Part shown: one piece after another, positions 30,165 to 64,000 of the stretch
Numbering within the stretch: position 1 is the first letter of the stretch
How the letters are laid out: every line of letters starts with the position of its first letter
DNA from: Macrostomum lignano
Lineage: Eukaryota
Direction of reading: 5' to 3'
NCBI GenBank assembly: GCA_002269645.1
Contig: NIVC01002475.1
Coordinates: 1-64,000 of the forward strand
DNA length: 64,000 bases
Position numbers and translations under genes: made by a program
Notes under the pieces: model-generated
Told to the model about the DNA's origin: nothing
Databases searched by the model: none
The model's input: the letters and a program-made list of their open reading frames with translations, nothing else

Positions 30165-30977
30165 GCCCTATTTCACCTTGAATAGAACGGCGATCAAATT
30201 GTGGCGGTCAAATGTACTCGTAGATGTAGTAGACCCGGCGGCCGCCCCCTTTGCCATGGCTGGACTTGCATATAAGGGGGGTAAATTTTGAGCTTACTTT
30301 GGCTTTTTAGACCAAAACAAAAATTTGGGCAAATCTGCCCCCACTACTTTAAAAATCCTGAATTGACCACCAAATCGGACTCATCTAAATGAAAACTTAA
30401 GAATACAAGCAACATTGTACATGCGCTAGTGCTTAAGTAGTGGAGTATTAAAAAATATATTTTTTGTTGCGTTGATTTCGAAGATCAAAAGGTATTACTT
30501 ATAAGTAGGTAGGCTAAAACGCACACTTTTGCGTTCACATCCAATTTCTGAAGTGTATGAAACTCAGAAAAATTTGCACGAGTCGCCTATACCCCACTTT
30601 GGAGCTTGCAGCAATTTTTCAAAGAGATGGCTGCTCAAAGGGTTAAAAGTTCAAGTTAGCTGTAGTATGAGGATTGGTCAATGCAAATAAATAATGAGCT
30701 CATTATACAAGAAAATAATTAATAAGGATATCAATAGTTCGCCCCACTGTCCACTGCACGTACTGAAAGGCGTACTGTCAGGTTCGAGCACAAAAACACC
30801 CGAAACTAAAAAAATCAACTTTAAAAATTCTGCTCTTTACATAATTTCCTCACAAAAATATTTCATACGTACAAAGAAGAAAACCTACAAACTTTTATCT
30901 TGCGGGATGGGGCGTACCCTTGAGGGCCGCCGGGGCGCCGGCCTAGAGGGTACGCCCCAATTTTTCTAACCACTGGG

Positions 30978-44500: not shown

Positions 44501-45684
44501 TCCTCTATTAATTATGGGAATTCCACACTTAAGATTCCTCTATTAATTATGGGAATTCCACACTTGAGATTCCACTGTCAATGATGGGAATTCCACACTT
44601 AAGATTCCTCTATTAATTATGGGAATTCCACACTTGAGATTCCTCTATCAATGATGGGAATTCCACACTTAAGATTCCTCTATTAATTATGGGAATTCCA
44701 CACTTGAGATTCCACTGTCAATGATGGGAATTCCACACTTGAGATTCCTCTATCAATGATGGGAATTCCACACTTAAGATTCCTCTATTAATTATGGGAA
44801 TTCCACACTTGAGATTCCACTGTCAATGATGGGAATTCCACACTTGAGATTCCTCTATCAATGATGGGAATTCCACACTTGAGATTCCTCTATCAATGAT
44901 GGGAATTCCACACTTGAGATTCCTCTATCAATTATGGGAATTCCACACTTGAGATTCCTCTATTAATTATGGGAATTCCACACTTGAGATTCCTCTATCA
45001 ATTATGGGAATTCCACACTTGAGATTCCTCTATCAATGATGGGAATTCTCCACTTGAGATTTCGCTATTAATGATGAGAATTCCCTGTGCTTATTCCGCT
45101 ATAAATCATGGGAATTCCCTTTTGAGATTCTGCTATCAATGACGGGAATTCCCTCTTCGCTATCAATGACGGGAATTTTCCCTTTAAATCCCGCTATCAA
45201 TGATGGGAATTCCCCGTTGAGATCTGGCTAGTAATATGGGAATTCCCCCTTAATAGTAATTATGGGAATCCTCGCTCTGAGATTTTGCTATCGATGATGG
45301 GAATTTGTAGAAATTCTCTCTGCGAGTTGGATAGGAATTCGATTTCCCTCATGAGATCGCGATAAATCGGTAACTAAAATTCCACTTTTTCTATTTGCAG
45401 TGTTCCTCGACGAGGTGGACTCGCTCCGCCGCCTACTCCAATCCGAGGACTCCGGCAGTCGGCAGACGGTGCTGCTGCACTGCCCAGACGGTTCAGGACG
45501 CACAGGCCTGGCCATCTGTCTGCTGGTGTACAAGGCCTGTCTGCAGCACAACCAGTCTGTCAGTCTGTCAACCGTGCTCTGCTCGTTGCGCGGCCAGCGA
45601 ATGAGTCTGGTGCAATCCTTGCAACAATACGAGTTCGTCTACGACGCCCTGATTCGCTCGTTGGATTCTACGCGACTTATTTAA
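32507..45684 (+). CDS. PTPN14: FERM-domain non-receptor protein tyrosine phosphatase, PTPN14/PTPN21 (Pez) type; exons 32507-32850, 37218-37551, 38626-39834, 40621-41319, 42718-43309, 45401-45684 (1153 aa)
   Basis: N-terminus MPGFRLKFQRKHRYDI..LLDG..YFGLQY..RWV.L.KP..FGVMFFV matches PTPN14/21. Linker has LPSYRKAADY, PPKY and STPNL. PTP domain ends QYEFVY..STRLI*. All introns are GT-AG with consistent phases and the exons sum to 3462 nt. PTPN14 and PTPN21 cannot be distinguished (likely co-ortholog). Confidence 0.93.
32900..33280. repeat. 28/31-bp minisatellite in PTP intron 1 (AGCCTCCCAGATCCTCAGTTGCTGGGCC)
   Basis: Period 28, with CCA-extended variants. Confidence 0.95.
34240..36540 (-). mobile_element. 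Decayed EnSpm/CACTA-type element in PTP intron 1
   Basis: Transposase relics KVNIDGLPLWKS (34557-34739) and ARAYFQCIASHT (~34400), an N-terminus RRKVLREADKHLAG (~35340), and a DUF4806-like relic LQYLNRLARDSDKELVRRI (35688-35945). Many stops and frameshifts; ends not located. Confidence 0.7.
37585..37960 (+). mobile_element. tRNA-derived SINE (376 bp)
   Basis: A box TAGCCCAGCGG (37592-37602), B box GGCTCGATTCC (37635-37645), A-rich tail, and 15-bp TSD AGATAAAAATGGCGG (37570-37584, 37961-37975). Confidence 0.88.
38010..38500. repeat. 37-bp minisatellite in PTP intron 2
   Basis: Period 37 (38041, 38078, 38115). Confidence 0.92.
39900..40440. repeat. 28-bp degenerate minisatellite in PTP intron 3 (TCATTGAAGGTCACATTGATCTAGTGGG)
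   Basis: Period 28 (40201, 40229). Confidence 0.88.
41440..42690. repeat. Two minisatellites in PTP intron 4 (~20-bp CCCATCATCGGATCCCGAAT at 41440-41870; 29-bp AATCCCAAATCCCTATCATTCCAGTCCCT at 42130-42690)
   Basis: Visible periodicity; the second array has period 29 (42421, 42450). Confidence 0.88.
43325..45300. repeat. 35-bp minisatellite filling PTP intron 5 (GGGAATTCCACACTTGAGATTCCTCTATTAATTAT)
   Basis: Period 35 (43641, 43676); about 48 conserved units plus degenerate edges. Confidence 0.97.
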
Positions 45685-46569
45685 ACATTTCCTTTATTTA
45701 AAACTACTGTTTGATAGTTGCGTAATCAGTAGTATCAAAAGAATGTATCGTTGCCTTAATAAGTATGCCATTGATTGTCACTTTAATCCGCTTTAGTCTT
45801 TCTCTTATTGTTGTCGGTTTCACTTTATTATAACAATTTTTATTGCTCGTTTGTTTGTTTGTTTATTCTGTCACTGACAATCTGGCTGGACCAAATTTGA
45901 GATGCGTTTTATTTAAACTTGTCACGCAAAGATGTTTTTCGATACATATCGGTTAGTCTACAAAAATTTCAAAAATATTGTAGCGCCTTCGCTCAGTAAT
46001 ATATCAAAGCTATTTTTTATTAATAATTAATAATCTGTTCTATTTTTTACTTAGCGATCTCGAACCTATCTGTACCATCTCATTCGCTCTCTATAAATAT
46101 CCCTTCAATATATATTATTTATAACAAATTTTATATATCATTAAGTCCCCCCGTCACTCACTTTTGCTATTTGAAATTGGCATTTATGAATGCGTATCAT
46201 TGTATGCTGTAAAATTTCTAATTTAGATAGTTTCAGTTGGGTTGCCCATATGCAATTGTGCAGATACTGACAGTAAGTAGACTATATAAGTAGTGTATTA
46301 GAATATTGTCGTTAAAATTTGTTATATTCGTTTATTATTCTCTACTAACAAGCCGCTGCTAGTACTTAAATTTTTTAATGCGGCTCTTTATTTGCCTTCT
46401 CTTGTCACTGTTGCTCCCTTTTACTTACTGTTTTTTTCTTTGAATGCGGTGGCTTTTCCTTGCTTAAAACAGTTAAGTTGTCCTCAATTTAGGACAAGTC
46501 TCCCTTGTCAAACAGATTTGTTTCTTTAATATCTTTCTGTCTGCCTCTTTCTAAAGCACCGTTTCTTTT

Positions 46570-47507
46570 GTGGCGCCTCCCCTGACTCACCTGAGGTGCC
46601 TCCCCTGACTCACCTGAGGCGCCTCCCCTGATTCACCTGTGGCGCCTCCCCTGACTCACCTGAGGCGCCTCCCCTGACTCACCTGAGGCGCCTCCCCTGA
46701 CTCACCTGAGGCGCCTCCCCTGACTCACCTGAGGCGCCTCCCCTGGCTCACCTGGGGCGCCTCCCCTGACTCACCTGAGGTGCCTCCCATGACTCACCTG
46801 AGGTGCCTCCCCTGACTCACCTGTGGCGCCTCCCCTGACTCACATTTTGCGCCTCCTTTGACTCACCTGTGGCGCCTCCCCTGACTCACCTCTGGCGCCT
46901 CCCCTTGACTCACCTGTGGCGCTTCCCCTGACTCACCTGAGGCGCCTCCCCTGACTCACCTGAGGCGCCTCCCCTGACTCACCTGTGGCGCCTCCCCTGA
47001 CTCACCTGTGGCGCCTCCCCTGACTCACATTTTGCGCCTCCTTTGACTCACCTGTGGCGCCTCCCCTGACTCACCTCTGGCGCCTCCCCTTGACTCACCT
47101 GTGGCGCCTCCCCTGACTCACCTGTGGCGCCTCCCCTGACTCACCTGAGGCGCCTCCCCTGACTCACCTGAGGCGCCTCCCCTGACTCACCTGAGGCGCC
47201 TCCCCTGACTCACCTGGGGCGCCTCCCCTGACTCACCTGAGGTGCCTCCCATGACTCACCTGAGGTGCCTCCCCTGGCTCACCTGTGGCGCCTCCCCTGA
47301 CTCACATTTTGCGCCTCCTTTGACTCACCTGTGGCGCCTCCCCTGACTCACCTCTGGCGCCTCCCCTTGACTCACCTGTGGCGCTTCCCCTGACTCACCT
47401 GAGGCGCCTCCCCTGACTCACCTGAGGCGCCTCCCCTGACTCACCTGTGGCGCCTCCCCTGACTCACATTTTGCGCCTCCCTTGACTCACCTGTGGCGCC
47501 TCCCTGA
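46570..47507. repeat. 23-bp minisatellite (GAGGCGCCTCCCCTGACTCACCT)
   Basis: Period 23 (46685, 46708); about 40 units. Confidence 0.96.
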
Positions 47508-48139: not shown

Positions 48140-49180
48140 CACTTCGGTGCACATAAGTGATAAATTTGAGACACATGAATGACCACTTTAAGACACATGT
48201 ATGACCACTTTAAGACACATGAATGACCACTTTAAGACAAGTATGACCACTTAGAAACACAAGTATGACCACTTTGGGACACATAAATGACCACTTTGAG
48301 ACACATGAATGACCACTTTACGACGGATTAATGACCACTTTAGGACGCATTAATGACCACTTTAGGACACATTAATGACCACTTTAGGACACATTAATGA
48401 CCACTTTAGGACACGTGAATGACCACTTTAAGACACGTGAATGACCACTTTAAGACACGCGAATGAACACTTTAAGACACATGCATGACCGCTTTAAGAC
48501 ACATTAATGACCACTTTTAGACAAGTATGACCACTTAAAAACACAAGTGTGACCACTTTGGGACACAAATGACCACTTTGAGACACATGAATGACCACTT
48601 TACGACGGATTAATGACCACTTTAGGACGCATTAATGACCACTTTAGGACACATTAATGACCACTTTAGAACACGTGAATGACCACTTTAAGACACGTGA
48701 ATGAACACTTTAAGACACGCGAATGAACACTTTAAGACACATGCATGACCGCTTTAAGACACATTAATGACTACTTTTAGACAAGTATGACCACTTAAAA
48801 CACAAGTATGACCACTTTGGGACACAAATGACCACTTTGAGACACATGAATGACCACTTTACGACGGATTAAAATGACCACTTTAGGACGCATTAATGAC
48901 CACTTTAGGACAGATTAATGACCACTTTAGGACACATTAATGACCACTTTAGGACACGTGAATGACCACTTTAAGACACGTGAATGACCACTTTAGGACA
49001 CATTAATGACCACTTTAGGACACGTGAATGACCACTTTAAGACACGTGAATGACCACTTTAAGACACGCGAATGAACACTTTAAGACACATGCATGCCCG
49101 CTTTAAGACACATTAATGACCACTTTTAGACACATTAATGACCACTTCAGTACACATTAATGACCACTTTAAGACACAGT
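48140..49180. repeat. 22-bp minisatellite (ATGACCACTTTAGGACACATTA) with higher-order blocks
   Basis: Period 22 (48361, 48383); a variant block recurs near 48236, 48519 and 48779. Confidence 0.93.
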
Positions 49181-49795
49181 AATAACGTCCTAACACGTAA
49201 GTCGCACAAATGACTTTCGGACATGAGTGACTTTTCGGTCATGAGTCACATGTACTATTTACAGATACATAAATTAAAGTCCTTACTTGGCATTTGACTC
49301 AATGCTCAATCCTATGCAGGACACATTGGCGGCTAATGCAGCTATAGATGATAATTTAACGGCCGCAGGAAAGGAAGTTTATTTTGCCAGTCGGACGGAC
49401 AATGGGATCTGGCAAAGTGTACATATCCATCCACCGCAGGGCAATTGTTTTGTTTTGTAAGTCTCGTTGTTAGGCACCCAATATAGTTCACTCCTTTCTA
49501 CCTCCCCCACCTCTCCCTCTCATGGCCTTCAATTGTATCAGTTATTCTGCAAGAGGCACATACATGTACATTTTGTGTGCATTTTTGTGTCTGAACCTCC
49601 ATTTAGGTTGGAAAGGATAGAATTCCTTTTAGAGCTGCTTTTGCACAGGCCTCACCTGCCAGTCCCTGCCACCCCAGTCCTCAAGTCGATGATCATTAAA
49701 ATGCATAAAAGCAAACAGTTTTGCAGATTAGTTTTAAAGGCTGCAATATCATCATTTTATTGAAAAAAAACAATACATATGCAAAGCCGCTCAAA

Positions 49796-51139
49796 ATGCA
49801 GGCCTCGTTAATTCTGCAGTTTCTGTGCTGCTGCATCGCCTTCCGCTTCTCGCTGGGCGCAGAATTCGGTCTGATTGGCTGTTTCAAGGACAACGAAACT
49901 CGAGACCTCTCCGGTTTAGTTGGCAAGCCCAATATCGGGCCCTACTCTGTGGTGGATTCTGATCGTGTCGTATTTGGCTCATTGACTTTGGAGCAGTGCA
50001 GCGAAGTCTGCGCCTACGAAAATTTTGAGTACTTCGGCGTCCAGTTTGAAACTCAATGCTATTGTGGAAACTCATATGGTCGCTTCGGAGCTGGCACTGG
50101 CTGCAACAAGACTTGCGCGGGCAATGCTGCCCAGATCTGCGGAGGGCTTTGGCAGAATTCTGTGTACCGGCAGGTCTACCTTCGTCCAGGTGGGATTAAC
50201 GGAATTTAGAATGTTCCTGTCTGCGTGTTCTGCGTACTCTAGGTACATATCTAAAACAGGACTAAATTCATGCATTTCCATTATTTTAAGAATCGTATTG
50301 TCAGCGCTCATTTTCGCGCCGCAGGCACTCATTTTAGCGCCACAGGCACTCATTTTGGCGCCGTAGGCACTCATTTTAGCGCCGCAGGCACTCATTTTAG
50401 CGCCACAGGCACTCATTTTAGCGCCACAGGCACTCATTTTGGCGCCATAGGCAATCCTTTTAGTGCCACAGGCACTCATTTTAGCGCCACAGGCACTCAT
50501 TTTGGCGCCATAGGCACTCATTTTGGCGCCGTGAGCGCTACATTTTGGCGCCCGAAGAAAAATTATTGATTACCACGAGTCACAAGGTGTGGTGGAGGGA
50601 CAAAGCATTGGCATGTCCCCCCATAGCTTTTACTGGGTGGGAGACATGTCCCCCCTGTCCCCCACCCCCCAGTGGCAACGCGCCTGCCTAAAGATCATAA
50701 AAATGCATGGCACTGCTCGACTCATGGTTTCTTGAGTCCATTTTAACATAGAACCCAAATTTACTAAACGAAAAGCTTAATGAATATCAATAGAGCTACG
50801 CTCGTATAAGATCAAAATCAAAATCAACATCAAAATTGAACACTTCCTTTCTCCGTAGTGTCTCCTAAAATTTTCCATGGCTAACTATACTCTTGACCTT
50901 TTTTAGTCAGCAGCAAGAATTTCATACGGACAGACCGAATCTACCTGAACGTGACCTCCACCAGCGGGCCCTTCTATAGCACGGTGCAGCCCGTCAAAAG
51001 CCTAGCCGAGTGCCTGGTTCGCTGTGGCGCTGACTGTCAGGCCGTGCTGCTGCATCTGAACGCCTGCCACCTGCTGAGATTCCCCGTCCTGCCGCACGAG
51101 CTCGAGGCCGAAACTGGCGAATTTATCGTTCGCGTGTGA
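49796..51139 (+). CDS. Secreted WSC-domain protein with C-terminal PAN/apple-like Cys module (exons 49796-50189 and 50907-51139; 208 aa)
   Basis: Hydrophobic signal peptide, then WSC motifs IGCFKD, LTLEQCSEVC, YFGVQFETQCYCG and CNKTCAGNAAQICGG..NSVY. A phase-1 GT-AG intron joins to SLAECLVRCGADCQAV..ACHL. Confidence 0.85.
50290..50550. repeat. 21-bp intronic minisatellite (GGCACTCATTTTAGCGCCACA)
   Basis: Period 21 (50345, 50366). Confidence 0.92.
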
Positions 51140-51179: not shown

Positions 51180-52219
51180 TAAACACCTTAAACACCATCT
51201 TATTGAAAAATATGGTAACCAAATTGTTTAACTCTGTGATTAAACACCATCTTATTGAAAACTCTTGTGAACCTTGTTTAACTCTGTGATTAAACACCAT
51301 CTTATTGAAAACTCTTGTGAACCTTGTTTAACTCTGTGATTAAACACCATCTTATTGAAAACTCTGGTGAACCTTGTTTAACTGTGTGATTAAACACCAT
51401 CTTATTGAAAACTCTGGTGAACCTTGTTTAACTGTGTGATTAAACACCATCTTATTGAAAACTCTGGTGAACCTTGTTTAACTGTGTGATTAAACACCAT
51501 CTTATTGAAAACTCTGGTGAACCTTGTTTAACTGTGTGATTAAACACCATCTTATTGAAAACTCTGGTGAACCTTGTTTAACTGTGTGATTAAACACCAT
51601 CTTATTGAAAACTCTGGTGAACCTTGTTTAACTGTGTGATTAAACACCATCTTATTGAAAACTCTGGTGAACCTTGTTTAACTGTGTGATTAAACACCAT
51701 CTTATTGAAAACTCTGGTGAACCTTGTTTAACTGTGTGATTAAACACCATCTTATTGAAAACTCTGGTGAACCTTGTTTAACTGTGTGATTTAACACCAT
51801 CTTATTGAAAACTCTTGTGAACCTTGTTTAATTCCGTGATTTTAAACACAATCTTATTGAAAACTCTGGTAAAACGTGTTTAATTCCGTGATTTTAAACA
51901 CCATAAAAAACACTGCCGGTGGCGGACACTTTTTACACTGCGGACACTGCCGGACACTGCCGGTGGCGCGGCCTTTGTTCGCGCCCAAGCCATGAAGCGC
52001 GCCCTGTGACGCTGACTTTTACCATCATGACAGCGTATTTTGTTGTTGTTGTTGTTGTTGTTAAACACCATCTTATGGAAAACTCTGGTAAAGCTTGTTT
52101 AATTCCGTGATTTTAAACACCATCTTATGGAAAACTCTGGTAAAGCTTGTTTAATTCCGTGATTTTAAACACCATCTTATTGAAAACTCTGGTAAAGCTT
52201 GTTTAATTCTGTTATTTTA
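51180..52219. repeat. 50-bp satellite (TAAACACCATCTTATTGAAAACTCTGGTGAACCTTGTTTAACTGTGTGAT)
   Basis: Period 50 (51301, 51351). Interrupted by a LINE fragment and truncated by the large CMC element. Confidence 0.96.
51905..52060 (+). mobile_element. 156-bp 5'-truncated RTE-like LINE 3' end
   Basis: GGCCTTTGTTCGC..GAAGCG.GC.CTGTGACGC..GCGTATTTTGTTGTT is shared with 11180-11258. (GTT)n tail; TSD TTAAACACCAT (51894-51904, 52061-52071). Confidence 0.9.
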
Positions 52220-52990
52220 CCCGTCGAACGTTTCGCCCGGAATTTTTTCCGGAATTTTTTGCGTTCACCCGGAATTTTTTCCTATTCCAGTAATGCAATC
52301 TGATCCGGGTGGAAATTCCGGATCTGTAACGAAAGTTTACAGAATCCGGGCGAAATTCCCGGATCAAAAAGAAAAATTCCGGAAAATAGACCCGGATCGC
52401 TAAAAAAAATTCGGTGACTGTTCCGGGTGCGATCCGGGCGAGTGGAACGGATCAGCACACGAATCCGGGCTAAATTCCGGGCGAGTGGACCGGATCAGCA
52501 CACAAATCCGGGCTAAATTCCGGGCGAGTGGAACGGATCAGCACACGAATCCGGGCTAAATTCCGGGCGAGTGGACCGGATCAGCACACAAATCCGGGCT
52601 AAATTCCGGGCGAGTGGACCGGATCAGCACACAAATCCGGGCTAAATTCCGGGCGACGAAAACCGGATCAACACACAATTCCGGGCGAGTGGACCGGATC
52701 AGCACACGAATTCGGGCTAAATTCCGGGCGAGTGGACCGGATAGTTACAGAATTCCGGGCGAGTGGACCGGATCAGCACACGAATCCGGGTTAAATTCCG
52801 GGCGAGTGGACCGGATAATTACAGAATTCCGGGCGAGTGGACCGGATCAGCACACAATTCCGGGCTAAATTCCGGGCGAGTGGACCGGATCAACACACAA
52901 TTCCGGGCGAGTGGAACCGGATCAGCACACGAATCCGGGCTAAATTCCGGGCGAGTGGAACCGGATCAGCACACAAATCCGGGCGAATTG
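52220..52990. repeat. Subterminal repeats of the large CMC element (CCGGATCAGCACAC / GAATCCGGGCTAAATTCCGGGCGAGTGGA)
   Basis: Dense direct and inverted CCGG motifs typical of CACTA subterminal regions. Confidence 0.85.
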
Positions 52991-53589
52991 TGGATCTTTA
53001 CCATAAGCCGAATCCTGTGCTTAGCAACGTAACGGAAAAATTAAAAAAAGAATGGGTCACTTCTCTATACATTTTCCACGACTAAGAATTTAATCCTCGA
53101 ACGGAAATATTAAATCCAGTTGAGCACAACTGTAAATCGTATATTTCTATGCACAGTACGTATACGTACTTTCCGAAACATGCTTTTGGCAAAAATGCGG
53201 ACCTTCTGAATGTCACTCAAATGAGCAACTGCACTTCGATTATCATATAACCGTAACCGTACCTTATCGAAACATTGGATACTCTTCAGGGATTCCCATC
53301 GACTACCTATATGAATGGATCTGTTGGGTGTGTCACTCGGCAAACAACTTTTAATTAGCTAGTTAAATCACGTCAGCTGACTTGTCTATTCACTTGCCTT
53401 TTACGGGACCCATCAAGGCTGATATATGTTGGCAGCCAATGTCTCAATAAGCATTTGTAATGAAATGTAATCTAGCGAAATTGCCAGTAACAAAAAGGTA
53501 GAAATTAATTGCAAATAAATGCGGTGGTGGTGTTACGGTGGTGTTCCATCTTGGACCCGAATTTAAATTCAATCATGAATTTAGTGAAT

Positions 53590-55164
53590 TCACTCCTCTA
53601 GTACTTCCTCTCCGTCTGGAGACATAAGCGCATGTCCCGGACTTCCCCGGATATCGGGCACCGGCTCGTGCGAATGTTCACCATGTTCACGAGCTGCGTC
53701 GTGCTGATGTTGTCTTTTGCGCGAACCGGAAGTCGACCCCTCATTTGCAGCAGCACTGGCGATTCGTCGCGCCTTGACCTGGTCTGCCTTCTTTTGCCGC
53801 TCTGCGGCTGGCCGAGCTTGAAAGAGAACCAATTCGCGGCAGCGACTGAACGCTTTCCTCAAATCGTCAAAGCTTACTGGCATGTTCACGTGCTTACAGT
53901 ACGCCTCGACCATCTCCAGCTTAGCCGTGTTTGCTGCACGAACGTGTCCAGTCTGGCCATGTGAGCCGCGACGACCGGAGACGCTGGAGCTTTCAAACTC
54001 CTCAACGGAGAATACAGCTCGTAGAATAGTCCGCACGAACGAAGCCTTCACTCGCTCTACTGTCTTCTTCGCATGCGGGTCCACGGCGTCCCGGTGTTTT
54101 TCAATGACAGAGGTGGCCTTTTCTCCGGCCGCTTCTATGGCCAGCCGGTCGCGCATGCTTACAAGCACGTTCTTGAAAGCGGGATCGGTGTCACAGATAG
54201 CGACTCCGGATCCGCCTTGCCCGCCGCTGGACGAGTGCACATTCAAAACGGATTGCATGCTGCGGTGCAATTCATTGGTTTGGCTAGTGCTGATAGGCCC
54301 TTGAACGAAAAAAGCGGATGATGCGCTTCGGCGTGATTCCGCAGTCTGTCCGGCGATCTCGTCGTCCGAATTCGGACCGTTCTCAGATGCAGGGTGCATT
54401 TCGGAGCCGCCCAGAATACTACACACTTCCCCGATCAGAATAAGCGACTGCTCCTGTCGCTTTGCGACACGACCTAGTGCGTGCACTGCCTGGCTCCTAG
54501 CTACGGTCGTGTCGGATTCCGTCGAGCTCGTAGCAGCGATCGCTTCCAACCGAAGTACTTCAGCTTTCAGCTGACGATTTTCGGCTTGAACATCCGACAG
54601 TTTTTCGCGAACTTCGCTCAATTGATGGCCTATTAAGTACATAGAAATGAGGAGAGTGGCGATCGAGGCAGATGCAAAAATAAAGAATCGACGACACTTA
54701 TCATATACGAGGCTGCTAAGGTATTCCATTATATGCATAAAAAACTTACGCAGTTCGTCCTCCGCTTCGCTTTGGGCCCGAATCTGTTCCATCATTGTGG
54801 TACAAGACGGACATCGTGACGGCTGCGGTTGCTGCGACGGAACACGCGCCAAAGCAGTCGCTTCAGTCGCTTGGGACTTTCTTTCGAAAGGCCCCTTCCA
54901 GATAGTGGCAGAGTACCGGGATCCGGTACTCTTATTTGCAGCCGTGACAACCAGGACACGGCACTTGCGGGTAGGCTCCTCAACCGCATGCGGAATAGCC
55001 ACAATTGAAGCGTCCTGCACAACGCCATACTGTACACTGCCCTGAGAATCTGGGGCGTATTGTACACTCCAATATCGATTAATTGCTCCGGAGTACGCTT
55101 TAAAATCAGCAGGGAGTTCCAGCTGCTTCTTTGAAGCCTTGGAAGTCTTGCTTTTTGATGTCAT
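53590..55164 (-). CDS. Transposon accessory protein with Tudor/SH3-like N-terminus, coiled coil and C-terminal BEN domain; probable 120-nt intron at 54630-54749 (484 aa spliced)
   Basis: BEN-like segment FVRTILRAVFSVEEFESSSVSGR..AANTAKLEMVEAY (~53830-54050). GTAAGT..TAATAG intron in frame; acceptor TTTTCAG 21 nt before the ATG. Confidence 0.78.
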   Translation of the reverse strand: MTSKSKTSKASKKQLELPADFKAYSGAINRYWSVQYAPDSQGSVQYGVVQDASIVAIPHAVEEPTRKCRVLVVTAANKSTGSRYSATIWKGPFERKSQATEATALARVPSQQPQPSRCPSCTTMMEQIRAQSEAEDELRKFFMHIMEYLSSLVYDKCRRFFIFASASIATLLISMYLIGHQLSEVREKLSDVQAENRQLKAEVLRLEAIAATSSTESDTTVARSQAVHALGRVAKRQEQSLILIGEVCSILGGSEMHPASENGPNSDDEIAGQTAESRRSASSAFFVQGPISTSQTNELHRSMQSVLNVHSSSGGQGGSGVAICDTDPAFKNVLVSMRDRLAIEAAGEKATSVIEKHRDAVDPHAKKTVERVKASFVRTILRAVFSVEEFESSSVSGRRGSHGQTGHVRAANTAKLEMVEAYCKHVNMPVSFDDLRKAFSRCRELVLFQARPAAERQKKADQVKARRIASAAANEGSTSGSRKRQHQHDAAREHGEHSHEPVPDIRGSPGHALMSPDGEEVLEE

Positions 55165-55744
55165 TGTCAGACGGAGAGCCTATAGCTGAAAAGGTTTCAG
55201 TGCAGGACACATTATGTTGAAGACATGTGCTTGTTAAATTCCCATACAGCTGCCCAGAACTGCGGGATCACCCAATTAAATAACCCAGTAGCATGCGTCT
55301 GTTAGGTAAGCGTTAGAAAATACAACATTAGGTGCATAAAGGCGCAAACTGTGACACTCAGTTAATTAAATAGATAGTGCTTTGACGCCATCCTGCTACA
55401 CTATACTACTTACAAACGCAACCATCAAATGATACAATGCGCATGGGAAGATATATTACCGAAGTCGAAGTTCATTCAGTTGATTTTCAGTCATGTTTGT
55501 CGTCAGATGAGTCAGCATATTGGTCACGTGGTGTCATTTTTAAGGAACTACACCAAATTAATAGACAGTGGTTAGTATTGTGCAGTATAAATTTACATAG
55601 ATTTATATGAGTTTTAAAACTCATGGAATCACGTGTCAGATAGTGAGGTTACAGTTTTGCACATTGAAAGTACTATTATATAGTAGCCAGGAGTACAGAC
55701 GTCGATTTCGACTTCAAGGCATCAACACCTACTGCAATAGATCG

Positions 55745-56434
55745 CTACTGCTGTTGTCCTTTACGACGCGACTGTCGCCCAAATGTCGGCGACTTTCCGG
55801 TGCATCCGGTGACATCCACATCTGCGGAGCCGTCGGCAACGGGACTAAACGACTGCTGGCGAATGGGTGACCGGTCTCTGAGTTGCACCGACACTGCCTT
55901 CTGTCCATGCAGCTCTTGGTGCCTCCTTTGTAGCCATTCAAGGTCGTCGGCGTCGGAATTGGAGTCACCGGCGACAAGCCAGCCTTCCCTGCGCTCTTTC
56001 GCAGATAATGGCACCGGTTTCAGCTTGCGGATGACGGCATTGGGAGTATGCAGTTGGCGCCTAACCAACTGCACATATGGCCGCGGCTTCGACTGGAATC
56101 GAGTTGAACTGGCGTCCAGCGCAACGAGATTCCGATGGGGGAGGTCACTACGCAGTTGAGCATTTTCGGCCTCAAGGACTTTTAGGTATCCCGTCGCCCA
56201 CTGCACTTTCTCTTCGTCATGACCGTCCCTGACCGCATACGGTGTGGGATTCCGACCGGTGTCGGATGTTACGCTATGCGTAACTGTAAAGCCGAGGCCA
56301 TCTTCGTCCCAGGAAGTGGAAGATGCCGAGACATGACGTCGCAGTCGCCGTATACGGCTATTTTCTTGCAGTAGTGCGTTGATACGATCCACAAGTGGGC
56401 TCAGGTTGTGGGACTTAGAAAATCGACGATACAT
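55745..56434 (-). CDS. Orphan 229-aa ORF inside the CMC element (short coiled-coil segments)
   Basis: Intact ATG-to-stop ORF co-oriented with its neighbours; acceptor ATTCCAG 10 nt before the ATG; no recognised domain. Confidence 0.55.
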   Translation of the reverse strand: MYRRFSKSHNLSPLVDRINALLQENSRIRRLRRHVSASSTSWDEDGLGFTVTHSVTSDTGRNPTPYAVRDGHDEEKVQWATGYLKVLEAENAQLRSDLPHRNLVALDASSTRFQSKPRPYVQLVRRQLHTPNAVIRKLKPVPLSAKERREGWLVAGDSNSDADDLEWLQRRHQELHGQKAVSVQLRDRSPIRQQSFSPVADGSADVDVTGCTGKSPTFGRQSRRKGQQQ

Positions 56435-57042
56435 GCTTGCCGGGCTGGAATTGTTGCGAGAATTGCCTTTGTCTACCTGTCCATCTGTTTACCTGTCTGT
56501 CTACATGTCCGTGTAACAGTCTAGCTACCTGTCTACCTGTCCGTATAACTGACTACCTGTCTGTTTAACTGTCTCTGTTTGTCTGTCCGTCTGTATGTCT
56601 ACCCGGCTGTCGAGTTACTGTTTAAAGTAATCAAAAAGTCTAACACAATAATCGCGCATAAGTAGGAAGTTTATGAATCATAAGCTGGTGAACAAGGTGC
56701 TGTAGTTACATTGCAACAGTCAAAGGAAGCCTTGATACAAGGTATCAAAATTACATTGAGTCATGCGCGAGTGTACAGAGGTTATAAGACAGTCGCAATT
56801 CATACAATGCTGTACAATAGTGTTTCCTCTGGTCTGACGAGATACGTCGCAGCTGATAGTAAGTTGAGTAAGTGAAGTAACAATTACCACTCATCATGTA
56901 ACTGGAACACTTCAAAGTCTAAAAAGCAATGCTCTCGTCAGACTTACACTAACATGGCCAACCTTACATCTGACGAGGCGCCAGGTTCGTCATCACTGTA
57001 TACATTATAGGACATGTGAACCGGACTACAATTTCGCGTCAA

Positions 57043-59727
57043 TCAGCCAATGGCAAGCTGTCCATGGGGCAGCAAAGCGATATGCGTTTCTGACACCGCA
57101 CAGCAGCCAATAATGTCGTCAGCTGGGCGACAGGTCGTAGGACCAGTCGCCTCCAGGTCGAACGGATCACATAGTAGCCGACGAACATGCGAGAATCGAC
57201 AACCCCTCTCGTCTGAGTCATCAAGGACTCCTGACATGGCGTGCATAGGTTCCATGTCGGGAAGTAGCACGGGCAGATTTTGCAGAACCACACTCAGGTT
57301 CGCCGATCCGTCGGCCGTCTCCGTCTGTGTGATCTCCAGCACCCTGTGGAAGTCGAATGTTCTGTCCTGTTCTGCAGTGGCAACAAAGCATGAAACGCGC
57401 CGACGCGATCGCCTGCTGACATTGAATACTTCCACAAACAGACCGCTGTCGAACCACATGGACTTCCAAGACTCGGGTGCCGTTTCCGCGCTGCGGCATG
57501 CTACGACGCGTCCGAATCTTCGAGTTTCATCCAACTCCCGCCGTCGACGATGCTCGACCGGATTTCCGGTCAGGCCTTGTCCAGCGGCAAGTAGACGCTC
57601 AACAACACTGACCAGCTCAACGTCCAGCATTCTTGTGCCATGTAACCGTCTCTTCAGGCGACTATGCATGGACTCCATGGGTCCCGAAGAAAGTCGGTGG
57701 ACTGGGCCAGCCAGGTTGGCATAGTCGACCATGTGCACGCATACTTGGTGAGCGTTGTAGGACTGCAGTCGCACGGAGTACAGACGTTCTATGGCTGCGT
57801 ATAGATACCTCATTGACAGACGCACATGAGGGAGTTCCGACTTTGGACCACCCTCCAGAGTCAACCAGAACATAGAAGCAGACAGCACTTCAATGTAGTG
57901 GAAGTGGTCCTTGAATCTCATGTCGTTCTGTTGGTAGTTCACGAGGAACTTCTCTATACACATGGGAAGGTACGCCAGCAGCCACATCTCGAATTCGTGG
58001 CCGCGGAACTTCTTCACCTCCTTCAGCTTGCGCGGGATGCGATGCACGCTTCTTGGCACCTTGATTTTGGCAACCTCTGTGTCGACTTCGACGATTCGGG
58101 TATGCAGGTCAGGTGTCCTCACTTGCGGATCCGGCTTCTGATGTCGTACTAGAAACAGTTGGCACATCAGGGAGCATACAACGCCAGCACAAAACTGATG
58201 TAAGTAGTCAGGCGGAGAAGCCTGAACATAGTCGAAACCGATCAGGCCAGCAAGAGGAGAAACAGACACAACACCGAGTGTGTCCGCGATCCGTCTTGCG
58301 GGATGGTTCCGTTGCTGTTGCTGCTGCATTTGTTGACGCAAAGCCAACCGACCGGTGTCAAGTTGAGTCCTCACTGTTGGTTCAATAAACCCTTTCGCCC
58401 TTGCACTGTTCAGCAAAGCAGGTGTAACTGTCGATGGATAGTACCTGCCGTACCCCGAGGGCTGCGGACTGGTTTTCAAATAACACTTGTCGCAGCCGTA
58501 TACGGCGTTAAAGCGTTTGAAACCGAGGGCGTCTGCTCGAGCGGGAGCATCAAAAATGGCGAATAAGGGATGCAGGCGAAGGTGCGTGCTTGAACCGTCA
58601 GGTCTCGTTACGTCGAGACCAGCGACGCGGAGAACGTTGAGTTGTTGGATAACTATGGGCAAAAATGACGCAGGACGCACTTTAGCTTTTCCAGCCCAAA
58701 GGCCACATAGAATGGAAAACTTCCACTGCCGTCGCAGCTGGACTTCCGTGATACAGAGATATACGGGGCATACCTCTGTGAAACCCGTGGAGTGCGGGTT
58801 GAAGCCGTCGCTGCACAGTGTGTAGGAAAGATCGGCACGCAAACTGGGATTGATGTGTAACAAGAAGCGTTTGTAGAGTTCGCTGGTGCCGTAGTACAAC
58901 TTCTGGTCGTCAACTTGTCTCCACTCTTCAGGCCAGACAACAGACTGAAGCAGACCGGCGTCTATTCTCTGCTTCAGCTGTTTACCTATGTCGAATGCCC
59001 AGAAATGAGCCAGTCCTTCAACTGAATCGCAGTGACTGCACGGTTGATTGTGGCCAAGCGCAGTTTGACCACATGACAGACAGACAGAATGGCACTGGGA
59101 AGATCCGCATGCGGATTTGTCTCCTAGCTCAGTTGCCATGTGATCGAAAACGCGCTCCGAACGCGGAATACTGCATCCAGGAAGCATGTCGTGAAGAGTC
59201 TTTAGCACCTGTCGTCGTACGGGCGCGGACAAATTGGCTTGTAAGAAAAGCGACTGCAGTGACGAAATAGCAGATCTCAAGGACACGGCATTTCCACTGA
59301 AGAATGACAAATTGAAGTAGTCCTGACCGCTCACGTCTCCCGCACGAGCATTGGATCCGGAATCTGGATCTTCACCAGCATCGCTGGCACCGTCTCCAGC
59401 ATCGTCTTGGTCGTCTACGACCGCATCGCCTACACCATCTCCAGCATCGTCTTGGTCGTCTACGACCGCATCGCCGACACCATCTCCAGCAGCGTCTTGG
59501 TCGTCTACGACCGCATCGCCGACACCATCTCCTTCTCCTTCTCCGGCACCTTCTCCAGCAGCAGTCCCATACAGACGGAGACGTCGCAGTCGCTGAACCC
59601 GCTCAACGACAGATAGTAGTCTGGTGTCAGCTTTTCTTTTAACACCTTTGCGATATTCTCTCATGTATTCTCGCATATACAACTGGCGGTCAGCCTGATT
59701 ATGTTGATCATTTCTGTTCATATCCAT
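57043..59727 (-). CDS. Intact EnSpm/CACTA-type DDE transposase (~894 aa)
   Basis: C4 Zn-finger (CLSC..CSHC), LCSDG (D), CGLWAG, IFDAPARA (D), FNAVYGCDKC, PPDYLHQFCAGV, YNAHQVCVH and SSGPMES (E). Uninterrupted ORF. Likely ATG at 59727, 12 nt after a TTGCAG acceptor. Confidence 0.92.
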   Translation of the reverse strand: MDMNRNDQHNQADRQLYMREYMREYRKGVKRKADTRLLSVVERVQRLRRLRLYGTAAGEGAGEGEGDGVGDAVVDDQDAAGDGVGDAVVDDQDDAGDGVGDAVVDDQDDAGDGASDAGEDPDSGSNARAGDVSGQDYFNLSFFSGNAVSLRSAISSLQSLFLQANLSAPVRRQVLKTLHDMLPGCSIPRSERVFDHMATELGDKSACGSSQCHSVCLSCGQTALGHNQPCSHCDSVEGLAHFWAFDIGKQLKQRIDAGLLQSVVWPEEWRQVDDQKLYYGTSELYKRFLLHINPSLRADLSYTLCSDGFNPHSTGFTEVCPVYLCITEVQLRRQWKFSILCGLWAGKAKVRPASFLPIVIQQLNVLRVAGLDVTRPDGSSTHLRLHPLFAIFDAPARADALGFKRFNAVYGCDKCYLKTSPQPSGYGRYYPSTVTPALLNSARAKGFIEPTVRTQLDTGRLALRQQMQQQQQRNHPARRIADTLGVVSVSPLAGLIGFDYVQASPPDYLHQFCAGVVCSLMCQLFLVRHQKPDPQVRTPDLHTRIVEVDTEVAKIKVPRSVHRIPRKLKEVKKFRGHEFEMWLLAYLPMCIEKFLVNYQQNDMRFKDHFHYIEVLSASMFWLTLEGGPKSELPHVRLSMRYLYAAIERLYSVRLQSYNAHQVCVHMVDYANLAGPVHRLSSGPMESMHSRLKRRLHGTRMLDVELVSVVERLLAAGQGLTGNPVEHRRRRELDETRRFGRVVACRSAETAPESWKSMWFDSGLFVEVFNVSRRSRRRVSCFVATAEQDRTFDFHRVLEITQTETADGSANLSVVLQNLPVLLPDMEPMHAMSGVLDDSDERGCRFSHVRRLLCDPFDLEATGPTTCRPADDIIGCCAVSETHIALLPHGQLAIG

Positions 59728-60804
59728 ACGCGCGACGAACTGCAATGAAGACGGTTGACATACAGACTTTTTGTGCGCTCAATATGAGTACTAATTAATG
59801 ACACCTAAGATTCCGATCCCCTAGTATATCGTCTAGTAAGCATATTTCCTAGTATATGTATAGGAAACACATTGGCACGTCTACATTGACAAGTTGCTAT
59901 CTAAGACATAGAACTCATTCCTCATGGTTACTATTTGTAAAACAACAAAGTACAGATTTACTGGAAAAAAGAGAGGAGGGCGTAATTCCGCCCCAAATAG
60001 AGTAGCAGGTTGTTTGTATTTGACGTCAGGTACACAAGTAGGTACACAAAGAGGTACACAAGACAAAAGCAGTAAATATTAAAGCATATGCATCTGACAG
60101 ATGAAACGACACGGTGAATAAATCTTGACTTCTCTTGTCTTCTCTTCTCTCACCTCTACTCTCCACTCTACTGTGTTCATCATCTCGTCCCTCTCTCCCC
60201 ACTCTCCTTTTATCTTATCTTTTATTTCTGTTCTCATCACATCCTCTCCCCTCCCATTTCTCGTTTTCTACCGCATTTTACTGTCTGGATCCCTTTTCTG
60301 GCCCTTGAGGTAAAATACGTTTGTCGACCTCGAGGTTATAAATTCATACGACATGAGGGCATGAATAGGGTATTTGTCACGCTAACGTGTTACACGCGAA
60401 AAAGTTAAATGCACCAGATAGGTGGAAGACTTATATAAAGGTAGACATAAACGGGTCTGGACGTGAAAAAAAGTACATGAAAGTACATGAAAAAATACAT
60501 GGGAAGAGCCTAATGAGTTAATGAGTATTTGGCCACCTTTGAGCACCTCCGCTAAAAATAAAACTAAGTTACAGTTCCTGGTCTTAAGGCGTTCTGCCTT
60601 CGCTATCCCTGCCCGCGCGGTCTTCCCCCATTTCAAAGAAATGGCAATTAAATCCCGAGTATAATTTATTCATTAATTATTAAAATTAGTAAGACTAATT
60701 TGGATTAGTCACATAAGCCCAATTAACCCCGTACGTACGTGACGATGATTCATCCCATATTAATTCGTCAGGAACTGGACGTTCTTTTCAAACTGTCAAA
60801 TCTG

Positions 60805-62769
60805 TCAAAACTTTTTTCTCTTTAACATTTTATTACGTTGGCTGCCCACGCCCAGGCCGTATCTACGGTAACGAGAGCGTAGATAATACTCGGCCGCGGT
60901 GGCGAGAGTGGTTGCTACTGTCGGCGGAGCCGCGCCGGAATCCGGCTGCGGTTCACCACTGGCCGTACTGCTAGCAACGCCGGCCGCGGTGACGAGAGTG
61001 GTTGCTACTGTCGGCGGAGCCGCGCCGGAATCCGGCTGCGGTTCACCACTGGCCGTACTGCTAGCAACGCCGGCCGCGGTGACGAGAGTGGCTGCTACTG
61101 TCGGCGGAGCCGCGCCGGAATCCGGCTGCGGTTCACCACTGGCCGTACTGCTAGCAACGCCGGCCGCGGTGACGAGAGTGGTTGCTACTGTCGGCGGAGC
61201 CGCGCCGGAATCCGGCTGCGGTTCACCACTGGCCGTACTGCTAGCAACGCCGGCCGCGGTGACGAGAGTGGTTGCTACTGTCGGCGGAGCCGCGCCGGAA
61301 TCCGGCTGCGGTTCACCACTGGCCGTACTGCTAGCAACGCTGGCCGCGGTGTCGGGCATCGGCTCATCAGGATCGAAAACGAGCCCTCTCGATGTAAGGC
61401 CTGTGCTAGGCCGCGCCAGTAGTGCCGGGTCGCGGACCATTAGTTGCGCTGCCTCGCGGCACATCGAAAGCACTACTGACGCACCAAAGCTACAATACCT
61501 TATCTCTACACCCACAATGGCCACGGCGACATTATCTGTCGTGCAGTAGCCACGGGGGATGCCCTCACGCAAAAGCATTTGTAGCAGGAAGCCGACTAGA
61601 TCTTTTTGGCCCTTACTGCGCTGATAGGCCACATCGACTCTCCCTGCCTCCTGACGGAGTAGCGCCAGCAGAGCGTCGGTTCGGTCGGCCAAGGGCTCAG
61701 TGCCCATAATGGCGGGCTTTTCGATTCCAGCTTTATCCCGCGAGCGCAGGCCCATGCCCAACTGCCGAGCCCAAGATCTGAGCAGGTGGAAAAGGCAGTT
61801 AAGGCCACAGCCACGCCGAACGACGTCTCGAATGCCGACTTGAAGGACGACCAGCCGCTCGAGCACAGCAGCCGGTGCCATGCTGACGTCGCATGAGTCG
61901 TTCTCTCCGTCTTCTTCGTCCTGCCACAGAAAGCCCGTGTAAATGTCGGTTGGGCTTTCCACGGCGGTTGTGAGTAGACCCATGACATCGCGAAGCATTG
62001 GCAGGGGCCAGTTCTGCAGAGTGACGATGGCATTGCAGCCGCACTGATTGGAAGCCGCCGCCTCGCGCCTGCTGGTTTCAACAGTCAACTGCGCAGCTGA
62101 GTGTTTTGACTGGTTCGCAGAGACAAACCGCTCTGGTCCAGTGTTAACAGGCGACCGATGCGGTGGCTTTTTCAGTGGCAATGCATTCGAACATGCGATG
62201 TGCCACTGCCACTGCTCCAGGACGGCGTCGACGCTAGCGTCTGGCGTGAGCAACCGGCCGACTTCGGCCACTGTCGGTTGCGTCGCGACGCAGGGACTGG
62301 CACTGGCTGGCAAATTGGGCCGACTGTGTACGCCGACTTCGGCCACTGTTGGCTGTCTCGCGACTCTGGGACTGGCACTGGCTGGCAAATTGGGCCGACT
62401 GTGTACGCCGACTTCGGCCACTGTTGGCTGTCTCGCGACTCCGGGACTGGCACTGGCTGGCAAATTGGGCCGACTGTGTACGCCGAATCCGGGCACGAGA
62501 TTCGCGAGCCACAGCCACGCGCCGTCCGTTCCGATCCTCTGGCTATACCGGTGTACTAGTTCGGCGACGCTGTTGCATCCGAGGTCAGCGAGAGGAACTT
62601 CAGCGCCTAATAGCTGTCGGTAGGAGGTCAACACGGACTCGATGCGCACCCGAGGTGCTGGACGGCCCCGATGTGCGGGGTACAGCAGGATGGCACGGAG
62701 GTTACTAAGCACGTCGGCTAATTTCCGTTTCTTTTCATCGGACAAATCCGAGATTTCGTTGCGATCCAT
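60805..62769 (-). CDS. 654-aa protein with N-terminal LOTUS/OST-HTH domain, 25-aa x3 and 30-aa x5 repeats, and a central unknown domain
   Basis: VLSNLRAILL..VRIESVLTSYRQLLGAEVPLADLGCNSVAELV fits the LOTUS pattern (TDRD5 EY..MVGNHLPLRILGYRSTMELV; TDRD7 LRAVL..EYRSLTGDWIPFKQLGF, both recalled). ATG at 62769 follows a CTTTCAG acceptor; AATAAA on the minus strand at 60665-60670. Repeats: 75-bp period at ~62258-62480 and 90-bp period at ~60890-61345. Confidence 0.8.
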   Translation of the reverse strand: MDRNEISDLSDEKKRKLADVLSNLRAILLYPAHRGRPAPRVRIESVLTSYRQLLGAEVPLADLGCNSVAELVHRYSQRIGTDGAWLWLANLVPGFGVHSRPNLPASASPGVARQPTVAEVGVHSRPNLPASASPRVARQPTVAEVGVHSRPNLPASASPCVATQPTVAEVGRLLTPDASVDAVLEQWQWHIACSNALPLKKPPHRSPVNTGPERFVSANQSKHSAAQLTVETSRREAAASNQCGCNAIVTLQNWPLPMLRDVMGLLTTAVESPTDIYTGFLWQDEEDGENDSCDVSMAPAAVLERLVVLQVGIRDVVRRGCGLNCLFHLLRSWARQLGMGLRSRDKAGIEKPAIMGTEPLADRTDALLALLRQEAGRVDVAYQRSKGQKDLVGFLLQMLLREGIPRGYCTTDNVAVAIVGVEIRYCSFGASVVLSMCREAAQLMVRDPALLARPSTGLTSRGLVFDPDEPMPDTAASVASSTASGEPQPDSGAAPPTVATTLVTAAGVASSTASGEPQPDSGAAPPTVATTLVTAAGVASSTASGEPQPDSGAAPPTVAATLVTAAGVASSTASGEPQPDSGAAPPTVATTLVTAAGVASSTASGEPQPDSGAAPPTVATTLATAAEYYLRSRYRRYGLGVGSQRNKMLKRKKF

Positions 62770-63134
62770 TGTGCTGAAAGGGTGTGACATTCGACTTATG
62801 CAAATAGCATTCAGCTTGAACTGTAGGGGACGTAACTATGGTAGTAATGGCTACTTTGATGCTATCGAGGTATCACTTTTCCTTACTGCACATATGTACA
62901 TAATGATGCGGAAAATGTATCATTCAATCAACTTGGGGTTCCAACTGTACGTTAAGTGAACAGTTTTAAAATTATGCTGCACCCAGTACTCAACAGTTTA
63001 CGAGGTTACCTTCAATACATAAAATTAATAACACGTATTACCCAATACTTTCGAAAACGGAAAAAAAGAAAGACAGAAGTCAGTGCACCAATACTAAAGC
63101 GCATAATTAAATTTTATTTTCAAATCGCATATCA

Positions 63135-63330
63135 GCTTAGCAGCTGCCTTGAGCCACAACAGAAGCGAGGATAGATTATCCATCGCAGGTCAGCATGGAA
63201 GCTGCCTTGAGCCACAACAGAAGCGAGGATTGATTATCCATCGCAGGTCAGCTTATCAGCTGCCTTGAGCCACAACAGAAGCGAGGATTGATTATCCATC
63301 GCAGGTCAGCTTATTAGCTGCCTTGAGCCA
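63135..63330. repeat. 58-bp tandem repeat x~3.3 upstream of the LOTUS ORF
   Basis: GCTGCCTTGAGCCAC at 63143, 63201, 63259 and 63317. Confidence 0.92.
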
Positions 63331-64000
63331 CACGATATGGTTACCGACCATAGTAGTCCGTATAGACTACTCTAGACGTGATCTGCTCACGGCTGGTGCA
63401 ACTGCAAACGCCTTAGACAAACCAATGGAGCATGCACCGACAAAAATCGGATTAGCGTCTATCTTAATAGGAAAGCTGCTTTGCCTACTGGGCCAGTTGG
63501 AGCTATTTGGAACCATGCCACTGTCTCCTTCTAGACACCCAGCTGTGTCAAACAATATGGTTGGCTGATTTTTTATGCTTCTAAGCGTCAAATATGACGA
63601 TAGAATCATTCAGCCCGTTGACACACTAAGCAGCTGTGATAGACTACATGCCAGTGGAAGTCAAACCTCTCGCACACAAACAGGGCGCAACAATTTTTCA
63701 ATTGTCACCTGTACGGAGGATGGGCTCAGCCTCACATTACGGACGCTACAGTGCCGCCGAAAAGCAGATCAATTTACATTGCAATTTCGAGGATTTATTA
63801 CCCCTCGCTTTACAAGAGGAATTAGCGCCGTTGACCAAACGGATGCCAGGGATTGCCTGATGGGATAGCCATTTGCTGGGGTCTGTATTCAGCGGTTTTC
63901 CATCGGAGGCTTCCTCTCAAAATCCCCATGGAACTTATATAATGGATGCCGGATTGATTCCGACTCAAGTCCCGAAATTTTCCCGGATCAGCTTCGCCCG

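Follow-up and report, generated by a model that had tools for sequence, protein, structure and literature searches.

A candidate transposon-borne gene with a LOTUS-like domain in Macrostomum lignano

We analysed a 64,000-nt stretch of the Macrostomum lignano genome (GenBank assembly GCA_002269645.1, contig NIVC01002475.1, positions 1 to 64,000 of the forward strand; called the window below) that contains a long open reading frame (ORF) with N-terminal similarity to the LOTUS (OST-HTH) domain. Our best explanation is that a large DNA transposon of the CMC/Transib clade has its left end at 52220 and extends slightly beyond the right edge of the window, so that most of it is included here. The transposase and a second gene, ORF524, would form the core of the family, and the LOTUS ORF would be a lineage-specific passenger or accessory gene that was either captured from the host or born within this element lineage. 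Its product would have a single N-terminal winged helix, probably a minimal LOTUS/OST-HTH domain, followed by two disordered tandem-repeat linkers, a 310-aa region and a highly basic tail. We give this explanation, of a transposon-borne gene with a minimal-type LOTUS domain, an even chance of holding as a whole. An earlier note on this DNA had reached a related interpretation; the domain and the location inside the element now appear probable, and the function it assigned is speculative.

The LOTUS ORF is an uninterrupted minus-strand frame at 60805..62790 that encodes 661 aa from the first ATG. A second Met codon at 62769 gives an alternative 654-aa version, which is the intact frame originally described. 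An ORF of this length is far above chance expectation for DNA of ~55-60% GC. The gene and its protein are organized as follows.

60805..62790, minus strand: the intact LOTUS ORF, 661 aa (ORF list and translation).
62491..62745, minus strand: residues ~16-100, a probable winged-helix domain of the minimal LOTUS/OST-HTH type (Pfam, below the gathering score).
62257..62486, minus strand: in-frame tandem repeat of 75 nt x 3.1, with a 25-aa unit rich in Pro, Ala, Val and Ser, directly after the LOTUS-like domain.
61306..62235, minus strand: central region of ~310 aa, residues 186-495, with no recognised fold (Pfam/NCBIfam and AlphaFold2, AF2).
60891..61351, minus strand: in-frame tandem repeat of 90 nt x 5.1, with an acidic 30-aa unit rich in Ala, Thr, Pro and Ser.
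60808..60885, minus strand: strongly basic C-terminal tail of 26 aa, net charge +10, ending in KRKKF.

The assignment of the N-terminus rests on profile and sequence comparisons. The LRAILL-type pattern quoted in the earlier note (LRAILL...RVRIESVLTSYRQLLGAEVPLADLGCNSVAELV) is present at residues 20-84. A Pfam search with the whole LOTUS ORF matched PF12872 (OST-HTH/LOTUS) with E=0.0082 and 16.4 bits, and this was the sole match besides a trivial coiled-coil. Residues 1-110 alone matched the same family with E=2.7e-4 and 21.2 bits (E-values corrected for 24,736 families), aligning residues 20-84 onto profile positions 5-57 of 71. Neither a reversed control sequence nor any of four shuffled ones had a Pfam match at E<=10, and an NCBIfam search of the ORF returned nothing relevant. 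A phmmer search of the Protein Data Bank (PDB; 177,635 distinct sequences) gave four weak matches, two of which are the Oskar LOTUS chains 5a49 and 5cd7 (E~1.3). Both chains align over the same residues as the Pfam match. By direct reading, the N-terminus also contains the turn-helix motif G-x-x-x-[LV]-x-E-L-[LV], which we take to be typical of LOTUS domains.

Several results count against a LOTUS assignment. The best PF12872 score lies 2.6 bits under the gathering score of 23.8 bits, so formal family membership is not reached, and the last 14 profile positions, corresponding to the wing, are unmatched. The profile check proposed in the earlier note therefore found the expected family at a score under its cut-off. 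Structure prediction was limited to single-sequence AF2 because the LOTUS ORF has no homologues from which to build an alignment. The model of residues 1-115 has a mean predicted local distance difference test score (pLDDT) of 51.8 and a predicted template-modelling score (pTM) of 0.37, which makes it uninformative, and a Foldseek search of this low-confidence N-terminal model against the PDB found nothing below E=2.3. The model does place helices at 18-35, 50-61 and 75-98, where the three-helix LOTUS core would be expected; this is weak support.

These weaknesses leave room for the view that the N-terminus is not a LOTUS homologue. It could be a generic helix-turn-helix or a chance match, and the ORF an element-specific orphan such as a DNA-binding accessory factor that acts on the subterminal repeats. 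The partial, sub-threshold Pfam match, the PDB matches at E~1 and the lack of fold confirmation by model and Foldseek are consistent with this view, and a basic tail with a winged-helix-like core would suit DNA binding equally well. Against it stand the E-value of 2.7e-4 after correction, the clean controls and the LOTUS-type motif. OST-HTH was also the sole family matched despite the many winged-helix families in Pfam, and the Oskar LOTUS appeared independently among the top four of all the PDB sequences searched. We consider this alternative unlikely. The N-terminus is, in our judgement, quite probably a true, divergent LOTUS/OST-HTH domain, and its LOTUS fold is probable, not proven. The original identification thus stands as to the family, which is the only meaningful one matched, and falls short as to threshold and structural confirmation.

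We compared this domain with the two known classes of LOTUS domain. Vasa binding requires a C-terminal extension that forms helix alpha5 (Jeske et al., PMC5458760); LOTUS domains that lack this helix, among them the MARF1, bacterial and plant ones, are not Vasa binders (PMC5458760). In the LOTUS ORF, PGFGVHSRPNLPASASP.., the first unit of the Pro-rich tandem repeat, comes right after the presumed wing (..GTDGAWLWLANLV); residues 99-185 consist of this 25-aa Pro/Ser/Ala/Val-rich repeat. No alpha5-type helix was found after the domain in the AF2 model at residues 99-115, where the pLDDT is <50. On sequence grounds the domain appears to be minimal rather than extended, because the Pro-rich repeat directly follows it, whereas Vasa binding needs alpha5. 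The earlier note had allowed for a minimal, RNA-binding LOTUS, and the minimal type agrees with the sequence. The domain resembles the minimal LOTUS domains of MARF1 and bacterial or plant OST-HTH proteins in its probable winged helix, which matches PF12872 over alpha1-alpha3, and in having no apparent alpha5. It differs from them in its score below the family threshold and in being a single N-terminal copy and not part of a tandem array. The protein also lacks a NYN nuclease, RRM or Tudor partner, and its gene probably lies in a transposon. The extended LOTUS scaffolds (Oskar, TDRD5/Tejas, TDRD7/Tapas and C. elegans MIP-1/2) resemble the protein in that long, disordered regions rich in repeats come after a LOTUS-like domain at the N-terminus. 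The Oskar LOTUS is its closest solved sequence, though E~1.3 is not significant. Unlike these scaffolds, the protein has no detectable alpha5, Tudor or OSK domain, and no homology to them extends beyond ~65 residues.

The product might act as an RNA-binding or ribonucleoprotein-scaffolding protein and not as a Vasa-binding one. We propose an RNA-binding role because binding of G-rich or G-quadruplex (G4) RNA is the conserved activity of the LOTUS family (PMC7498356). A point against this reading is that neither strand of the element contains a canonical G4 motif, which does not support a simple model of self-RNA G4 binding. We accordingly rejected the idea that the domain binds G4 RNA of the element itself.

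The earlier note had gone further and suggested that the protein may let the element evade silencing by Piwi-interacting RNAs (piRNAs), either by acting as a decoy for Vasa/nuage or by providing a signal for targeting to germ granules. In its broadest form, an active animal DNA transposon would have acquired a LOTUS scaffold that blunts silencing, either by entry into germ granules or through contact with the Vasa/piRNA machinery or the RNA substrates of that machinery. A Vasa/piRNA system in the host is plausible, and the window contains an animal-type FERM-PTP gene of the PTPN14/21 type. There are also precedents for anti-silencing genes in DNA transposons, such as VANC, which is encoded by Arabidopsis VANDAL elements. 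Epigenetic genes are known as well: fungal KDZ/CMCT elements carry TET/JBP dioxygenase genes (PMC12730594). The combination of a LOTUS domain with disordered repeats further resembles the germ-granule scaffolds MIP-1/2, Oskar and TDRD5/7 (PMC8331183, PMC5458760). Other points run the other way. The alpha5 extension essential for Vasa binding is not apparent, and LOTUS domains are not specific to germ granules, being found in bacteria, plants and fungi (PMC7498356, PMC2848206). The basic KRKK tail would suggest nuclear over perinuclear localisation, and a complete relative of the element, described below, lacks the LOTUS gene. Counter-defence of this kind is not supported by our analysis, and we regard both its specific and its broad form as very improbable. 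If true, this would be the first case of a transposon that encodes an antagonist derived from a germ-granule domain. LOTUS domains organise Vasa and RNA in animal germ granules, and a copy in a transposon would open the conflict of transposons with these granules to direct testing. DNA transposons with extra genes that act on host silencing, such as VANC and TET/JBP, are rare and informative.

The central region of the LOTUS protein has no Pfam or NCBIfam match, and an AF2 model of residues 186-500 made with no alignment has a pLDDT of 38. A second or third, degenerate LOTUS domain in this region (CGLNCLFHLLRSWARQLG compared with LGCNSVAELVHRYSQRIG) was considered and rejected: the Smith-Waterman score was reached by 21% of shuffles, and the sub-segments had no Pfam match. 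The basic KRKKF tail resembles a nuclear localisation signal or a tail that binds nucleic acid. The copies of the 90-nt repeat at 60891-61351 are 98% identical and differ from one another at 0-1 nt. Young in-frame minisatellites of this sort are common to the transposase and the LOTUS ORF. The 90-nt coding repeat also holds CCGGAATCCGG, which is similar to the CCGGAA/CCGGAT motifs of the element termini. It is the only CCGG-dense stretch in the interior of the element, and the similarity may be a coincidence.

Homologues of the LOTUS ORF were sought in large protein collections. A word-index search of a database of 5.8 billion proteins found none, an exhaustive phmmer search of 1.8 billion representative proteins found none, and an exact-sequence lookup was empty. 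The sole phmmer match (P0002) is a prokaryotic PKD-repeat protein with a faint W-x-W motif summed over nine repeats, and we rejected it as spurious.

The LOTUS ORF is one of four minus-strand ORFs, in the order LOTUS ORF, transposase, ORF229 and ORF524, between two regions of shared repeat motifs. The features that define the proposed element, apart from the LOTUS ORF, are as follows.

52220..52252, plus strand: proposed left terminal inverted repeat (TIR), CCCGTCGAACGTTTCGCCCGGAATTTTTTCCGG, the best match in the window to the TIR of the relative L001 and reading inward.
52253..52990, plus strand: left subterminal CCGG-rich region, which includes the 43-nt array units.
53590..55164, minus strand: ORF524, the second family-conserved gene, with a coiled-coil-like region (tblastn/tblastx to L001).
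55745..56434, minus strand: ORF229, flanked by the transposase and ORF524 and absent from L001.
57043..59745, minus strand: intact transposase ORF, 900 aa, with a probable start ATG at 59727 and the motifs D313, D399, C418xxC421, H666x4H671 and E691.
63948..64000, plus strand: inner edge of the presumed right subterminal region (CCGGAT, CCGGATCAGC, TCGCCCG), which ends at the window edge.

The transposase was classified from its motif architecture. Pfam gave a weak match to DUF4218 only (E=0.017-0.04; 14-15 bits, cut-off 27). Its sole database relative is a protein (P0001) with 40% identity over 93% of its length, for which Pfam found no match. In the alignment of these two sequences, D313, D399, C418-x2-C421, H666-x4-H671 and E691 are all invariant, and the catalytic interval contains only one CxxC and one H(3-4)H motif. 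The second D lies 19 residues from the CxxC, and the second H lies 20 residues from the E. The corresponding residues of RAG1 (D708, C727/C730, H937/H942 and E962) have the same spacings. The transposase fits the D-D-CxxC-Hx4H-E signature that defines the CMC/CMCT clade (PMC12730594), and the architecture supports its placement in the CMC/Transib type. The claim that the LOTUS ORF adjoins an intact CMC transposase is thus upheld, both by these motifs and by the uninterrupted 900-aa frame. Two further observations concern this gene. Its N-terminal region contains an in-frame tandem repeat of 45 nt x 3.4 (GDGVGDAVVDDQDDA; 59378-59532, minus strand). Its ATG is preceded, at a distance of 12 nt, by a sequence that resembles a splice acceptor (tcttcattgcag; 59727-59760, minus strand) and through which the frame stays open; this raises the possibility of a spliced leader or of a shared 5' exon as in En/Spm. 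Elsewhere in the window, a 517-aa ORF at 25165-26718 (plus strand) matches the C-terminal half of the transposase at 25726-26364 (26% identity over 232 aa, E=2e-12). This ORF has no Pfam match and no LOTUS-like ORF nearby, and probably represents a piece of another, divergent CMC-type element.

The gene for P0001 lies on a 10.2-kb marine metagenome contig from Tara Oceans (L001), which holds a complete element of ~9.95 kb. Its TIRs are 33 nt long (97-129 and 10011-10043), are 97% complementary and begin with CCCGCTGAAAAAATCGTCCGG (CCCGCTG...). CCGG-rich subterminal arrays lie at 178-656 and 9685-9961. The transposase gene (3923-6514) is preceded by one TIR, its array and 3.3 kb that contain no long ORF, and is followed by a second gene (7509-9342), the other array and the other TIR. 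No target-site duplication (TSD) is recognisable in the L001 flanks (..ACAAT / CCTCA..), although cut-and-paste elements usually have one. ORF524 matches L001 by tblastn at 7767-8198 (E=1e-18) and 8551-9273 (E=1e-14), and also by tblastx. The transposase and ORF524 both have counterparts in L001 and therefore form the conserved core of the family. ORF524 may have a TnpA-like accessory role. ORF229 has no Pfam or NCBIfam match and no counterpart in L001, and by these comparisons it would be a second lineage-specific ORF of the element. The 5' internal regions of the two elements show no DNA or translated similarity. No further relatives of the transposon were found in the protein database by profile search, in JGI metagenomes or among viral contigs. 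An exact 21-nt array probe gave two matches in metagenomes, which we rejected as single chance hits in prokaryote-like contigs of 60-64% GC.

The proposed element was also compared with known CMC/CMCT transposons (EnSpm/CACTA, Mirage, Chapaev, Transib, Plavaka and ESTA). It resembles them in its long subterminal arrays, its second conserved ORF and its weak match to DUF4218. The termini of this family are CCCG...CGGG and not CA...TG: L001 starts with CCCGCTG, and the left end in the window with CCCGTCG. CMC/CMCT elements have a TSD of 2-5 bp and, in most members, CA...TG termini, and in addition to its different ends L001 has flanks without a duplication. The element further stands apart in having a sole relative at 40% identity. 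We conclude that the locus defines a CMC/Transib-clade family with CCCG termini that is undescribed in the databases searched and that is also present in Tara Oceans plankton.

We then considered whether the LOTUS ORF lies inside this element. A scan of the whole window with the L001 TIR, on both strands, gave a best match of 22/33 at 52220 (plus strand). The score alone equals that of the best shuffle, and the evidence for this TIR is its position at the outer edge of the array and its inward orientation. The reverse complement of 52220-52240 is CCGGGCGAAACGTTCGACGGG. By analogy with L001, the left end of the element would be at 52220, and the satellite arrays at 50.3-52.2 kb lie outside it. 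The left subterminal array reported earlier is clearly present: CCGGGCGA occurs 16 times in 52346-52986, with 0.95 copies expected across the whole window. The earlier note had also pointed to matching CCGG motifs at the window end. The array 10-mer CCGGATCAGC is found 8 times in the left arm and once elsewhere in the 64 kb, as an exact copy at 63983, and it is followed by TCGCCCG, an inverted form of the array core CCGGGCGA that is cut by the window edge. The interval 53100-63900 lacks CCGG-dense and TIR-like sequence except for the LOTUS ORF's own coding repeat (CCGGAATCCGG). The earlier note had held that its interpretation would fail if the right end of the element separated the transposase from the LOTUS ORF; no terminus was found in the 1-kb spacer that runs from the start of the transposase to the stop codon of the LOTUS ORF. 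We judge it likely that the LOTUS ORF is internal to the element, because no terminus or CCGG-dense sequence divides it from the transposase and the array motifs resume only from 63948 onward. The right TIR is probably beyond the window, ~0.7-0.8 kb further, and the estimated size of the element is about 12.5 kb. A nested element around the LOTUS ORF was ruled out because no repeats bracket it.

The placement of the LOTUS ORF inside the element has to be weighed against the alternative that it is an ordinary host gene or a newborn orphan next to the transposon. The CCGG motifs at the right edge would then come from a separate copy, a non-autonomous relative or a solo end. In the transposase-bearing copy, a right end near 59.8-60.8 kb would either have been lost or never have been recognisable. 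Several points favour this alternative or weigh against our own interpretation. The right terminus is off the window, so inclusion rests on ~50 nt of common motifs and on the fact that no end intervenes. No second copy of the LOTUS ORF was found in the protein, metagenome and viral collections, and one copy of the element is seen. The LOTUS ORF has a GC content at third codon positions (GC3) of 0.62, compared with 0.54 for the core genes, which makes it somewhat GC-richer. It also appears to have its own poly(A) signal, an AATAAA ~135 nt past the stop codon, and is separated from the transposase by the 1-kb AT-rich spacer. Finally, L001 lacks the gene. The higher GC3 fits recent capture and fits a host gene equally well; codon usage and GC3 do not discriminate between an element gene and a host gene. 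In this part of the window, coding segments have a GC content of 53-61% and spacers of 38-44%.

Other evidence disfavours a neighbouring host gene. No TIR-like or CCGG-dense sequence separates the transposase from the LOTUS ORF, which is on the same strand as all the element genes. L001 also has 3.3 kb between the transposase and the 5' array, so the 4.2 kb that separate the transposase from the presumed array in the window are proportionate. No host-like homologue was found in the databases searched. We therefore regard a host gene or orphan outside the element as improbable, about to the same degree as a chance resemblance to LOTUS, and retain a transposon-borne gene as the preferred interpretation.

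If the LOTUS ORF is part of the element, it is a gene that the family does not share. The 3.3-kb 5' internal region of L001 contains no ORF of at least 100 aa and no Pfam domain in the three frames of the transposase strand, and neither tblastn nor tblastx matched this region to the LOTUS ORF or to the sequence around that ORF. The LOTUS ORF appears to be lineage-specific because L001 is a complete relative without the gene; it would have been gained in the window lineage or lost in the L001 lineage. The question whether the ORF always travels with the transposase, raised in the earlier note, is answered in the negative by this sole comparator, and no other copies of the gene were found in the protein, metagenome and viral collections. 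As to the idea that a LOTUS module was captured, lineage-specific acquisition is plausible, since the complete relative lacks the gene. A third, non-transposase gene that is carried within an element in one lineage and absent from a relative is a feature of known gene-carrying transposons (KDZ/CMCT with TET/JBP, VANDAL with VANC, CACTA and Pack-MULE). The passenger proposed here differs from theirs in bearing a LOTUS-like domain. The earlier note knew of no association between CMC elements and LOTUS, and likewise we found no report of a LOTUS domain in a DNA transposon in the literature searched. On a conservative reading, the locus represents an undescribed transposon family and would also be a clean case of lineage-specific gene gain in such an element.

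The rest of the window contains host and repeat sequences. CpG observed/expected ratios are ~0.9-1.25 in all coding segments of both element and host, and so give no sign of CpG depletion by germline methylation. Host-gene exons encode a FERM_C domain (38644-39891, plus strand) and a protein-tyrosine-phosphatase (PTP) domain (42622-43359, plus strand) whose best solved relatives include PTPN21 and PTPN14. Together they point to a Pez-like FERM-PTP gene, which is typical of animals; taken with the relative in Tara Oceans, this gene suggests that the host is a marine animal. A 35-nt satellite of ~49 or more copies begins in or just past the PTP ORF (43222 onward). The window is unusually rich in minisatellites, at 18823-19836, 29575-30278, 43222-45000, 46464-47455, 48155-49264, 50303-50552 and 51188-52219, with periods of 34, 16 (perfect copies), 35, 23, 22, 21 and 50-52 nt. 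The 50-52-nt array adjoins the left terminus of the transposon at 52220. A 380-aa ORF with an RVT_1 reverse-transcriptase domain (9672-10814, plus strand) lies in a block of 60% GC and is probably a retroelement fragment. Inverted repeats at 13715-13879 and 15397-15828, in a region of 32-36% GC, are 86-122 nt long, 76-84% complementary and ~1.6-1.8 kb apart, and they may represent a foldback element or one resembling a miniature inverted-repeat transposable element.

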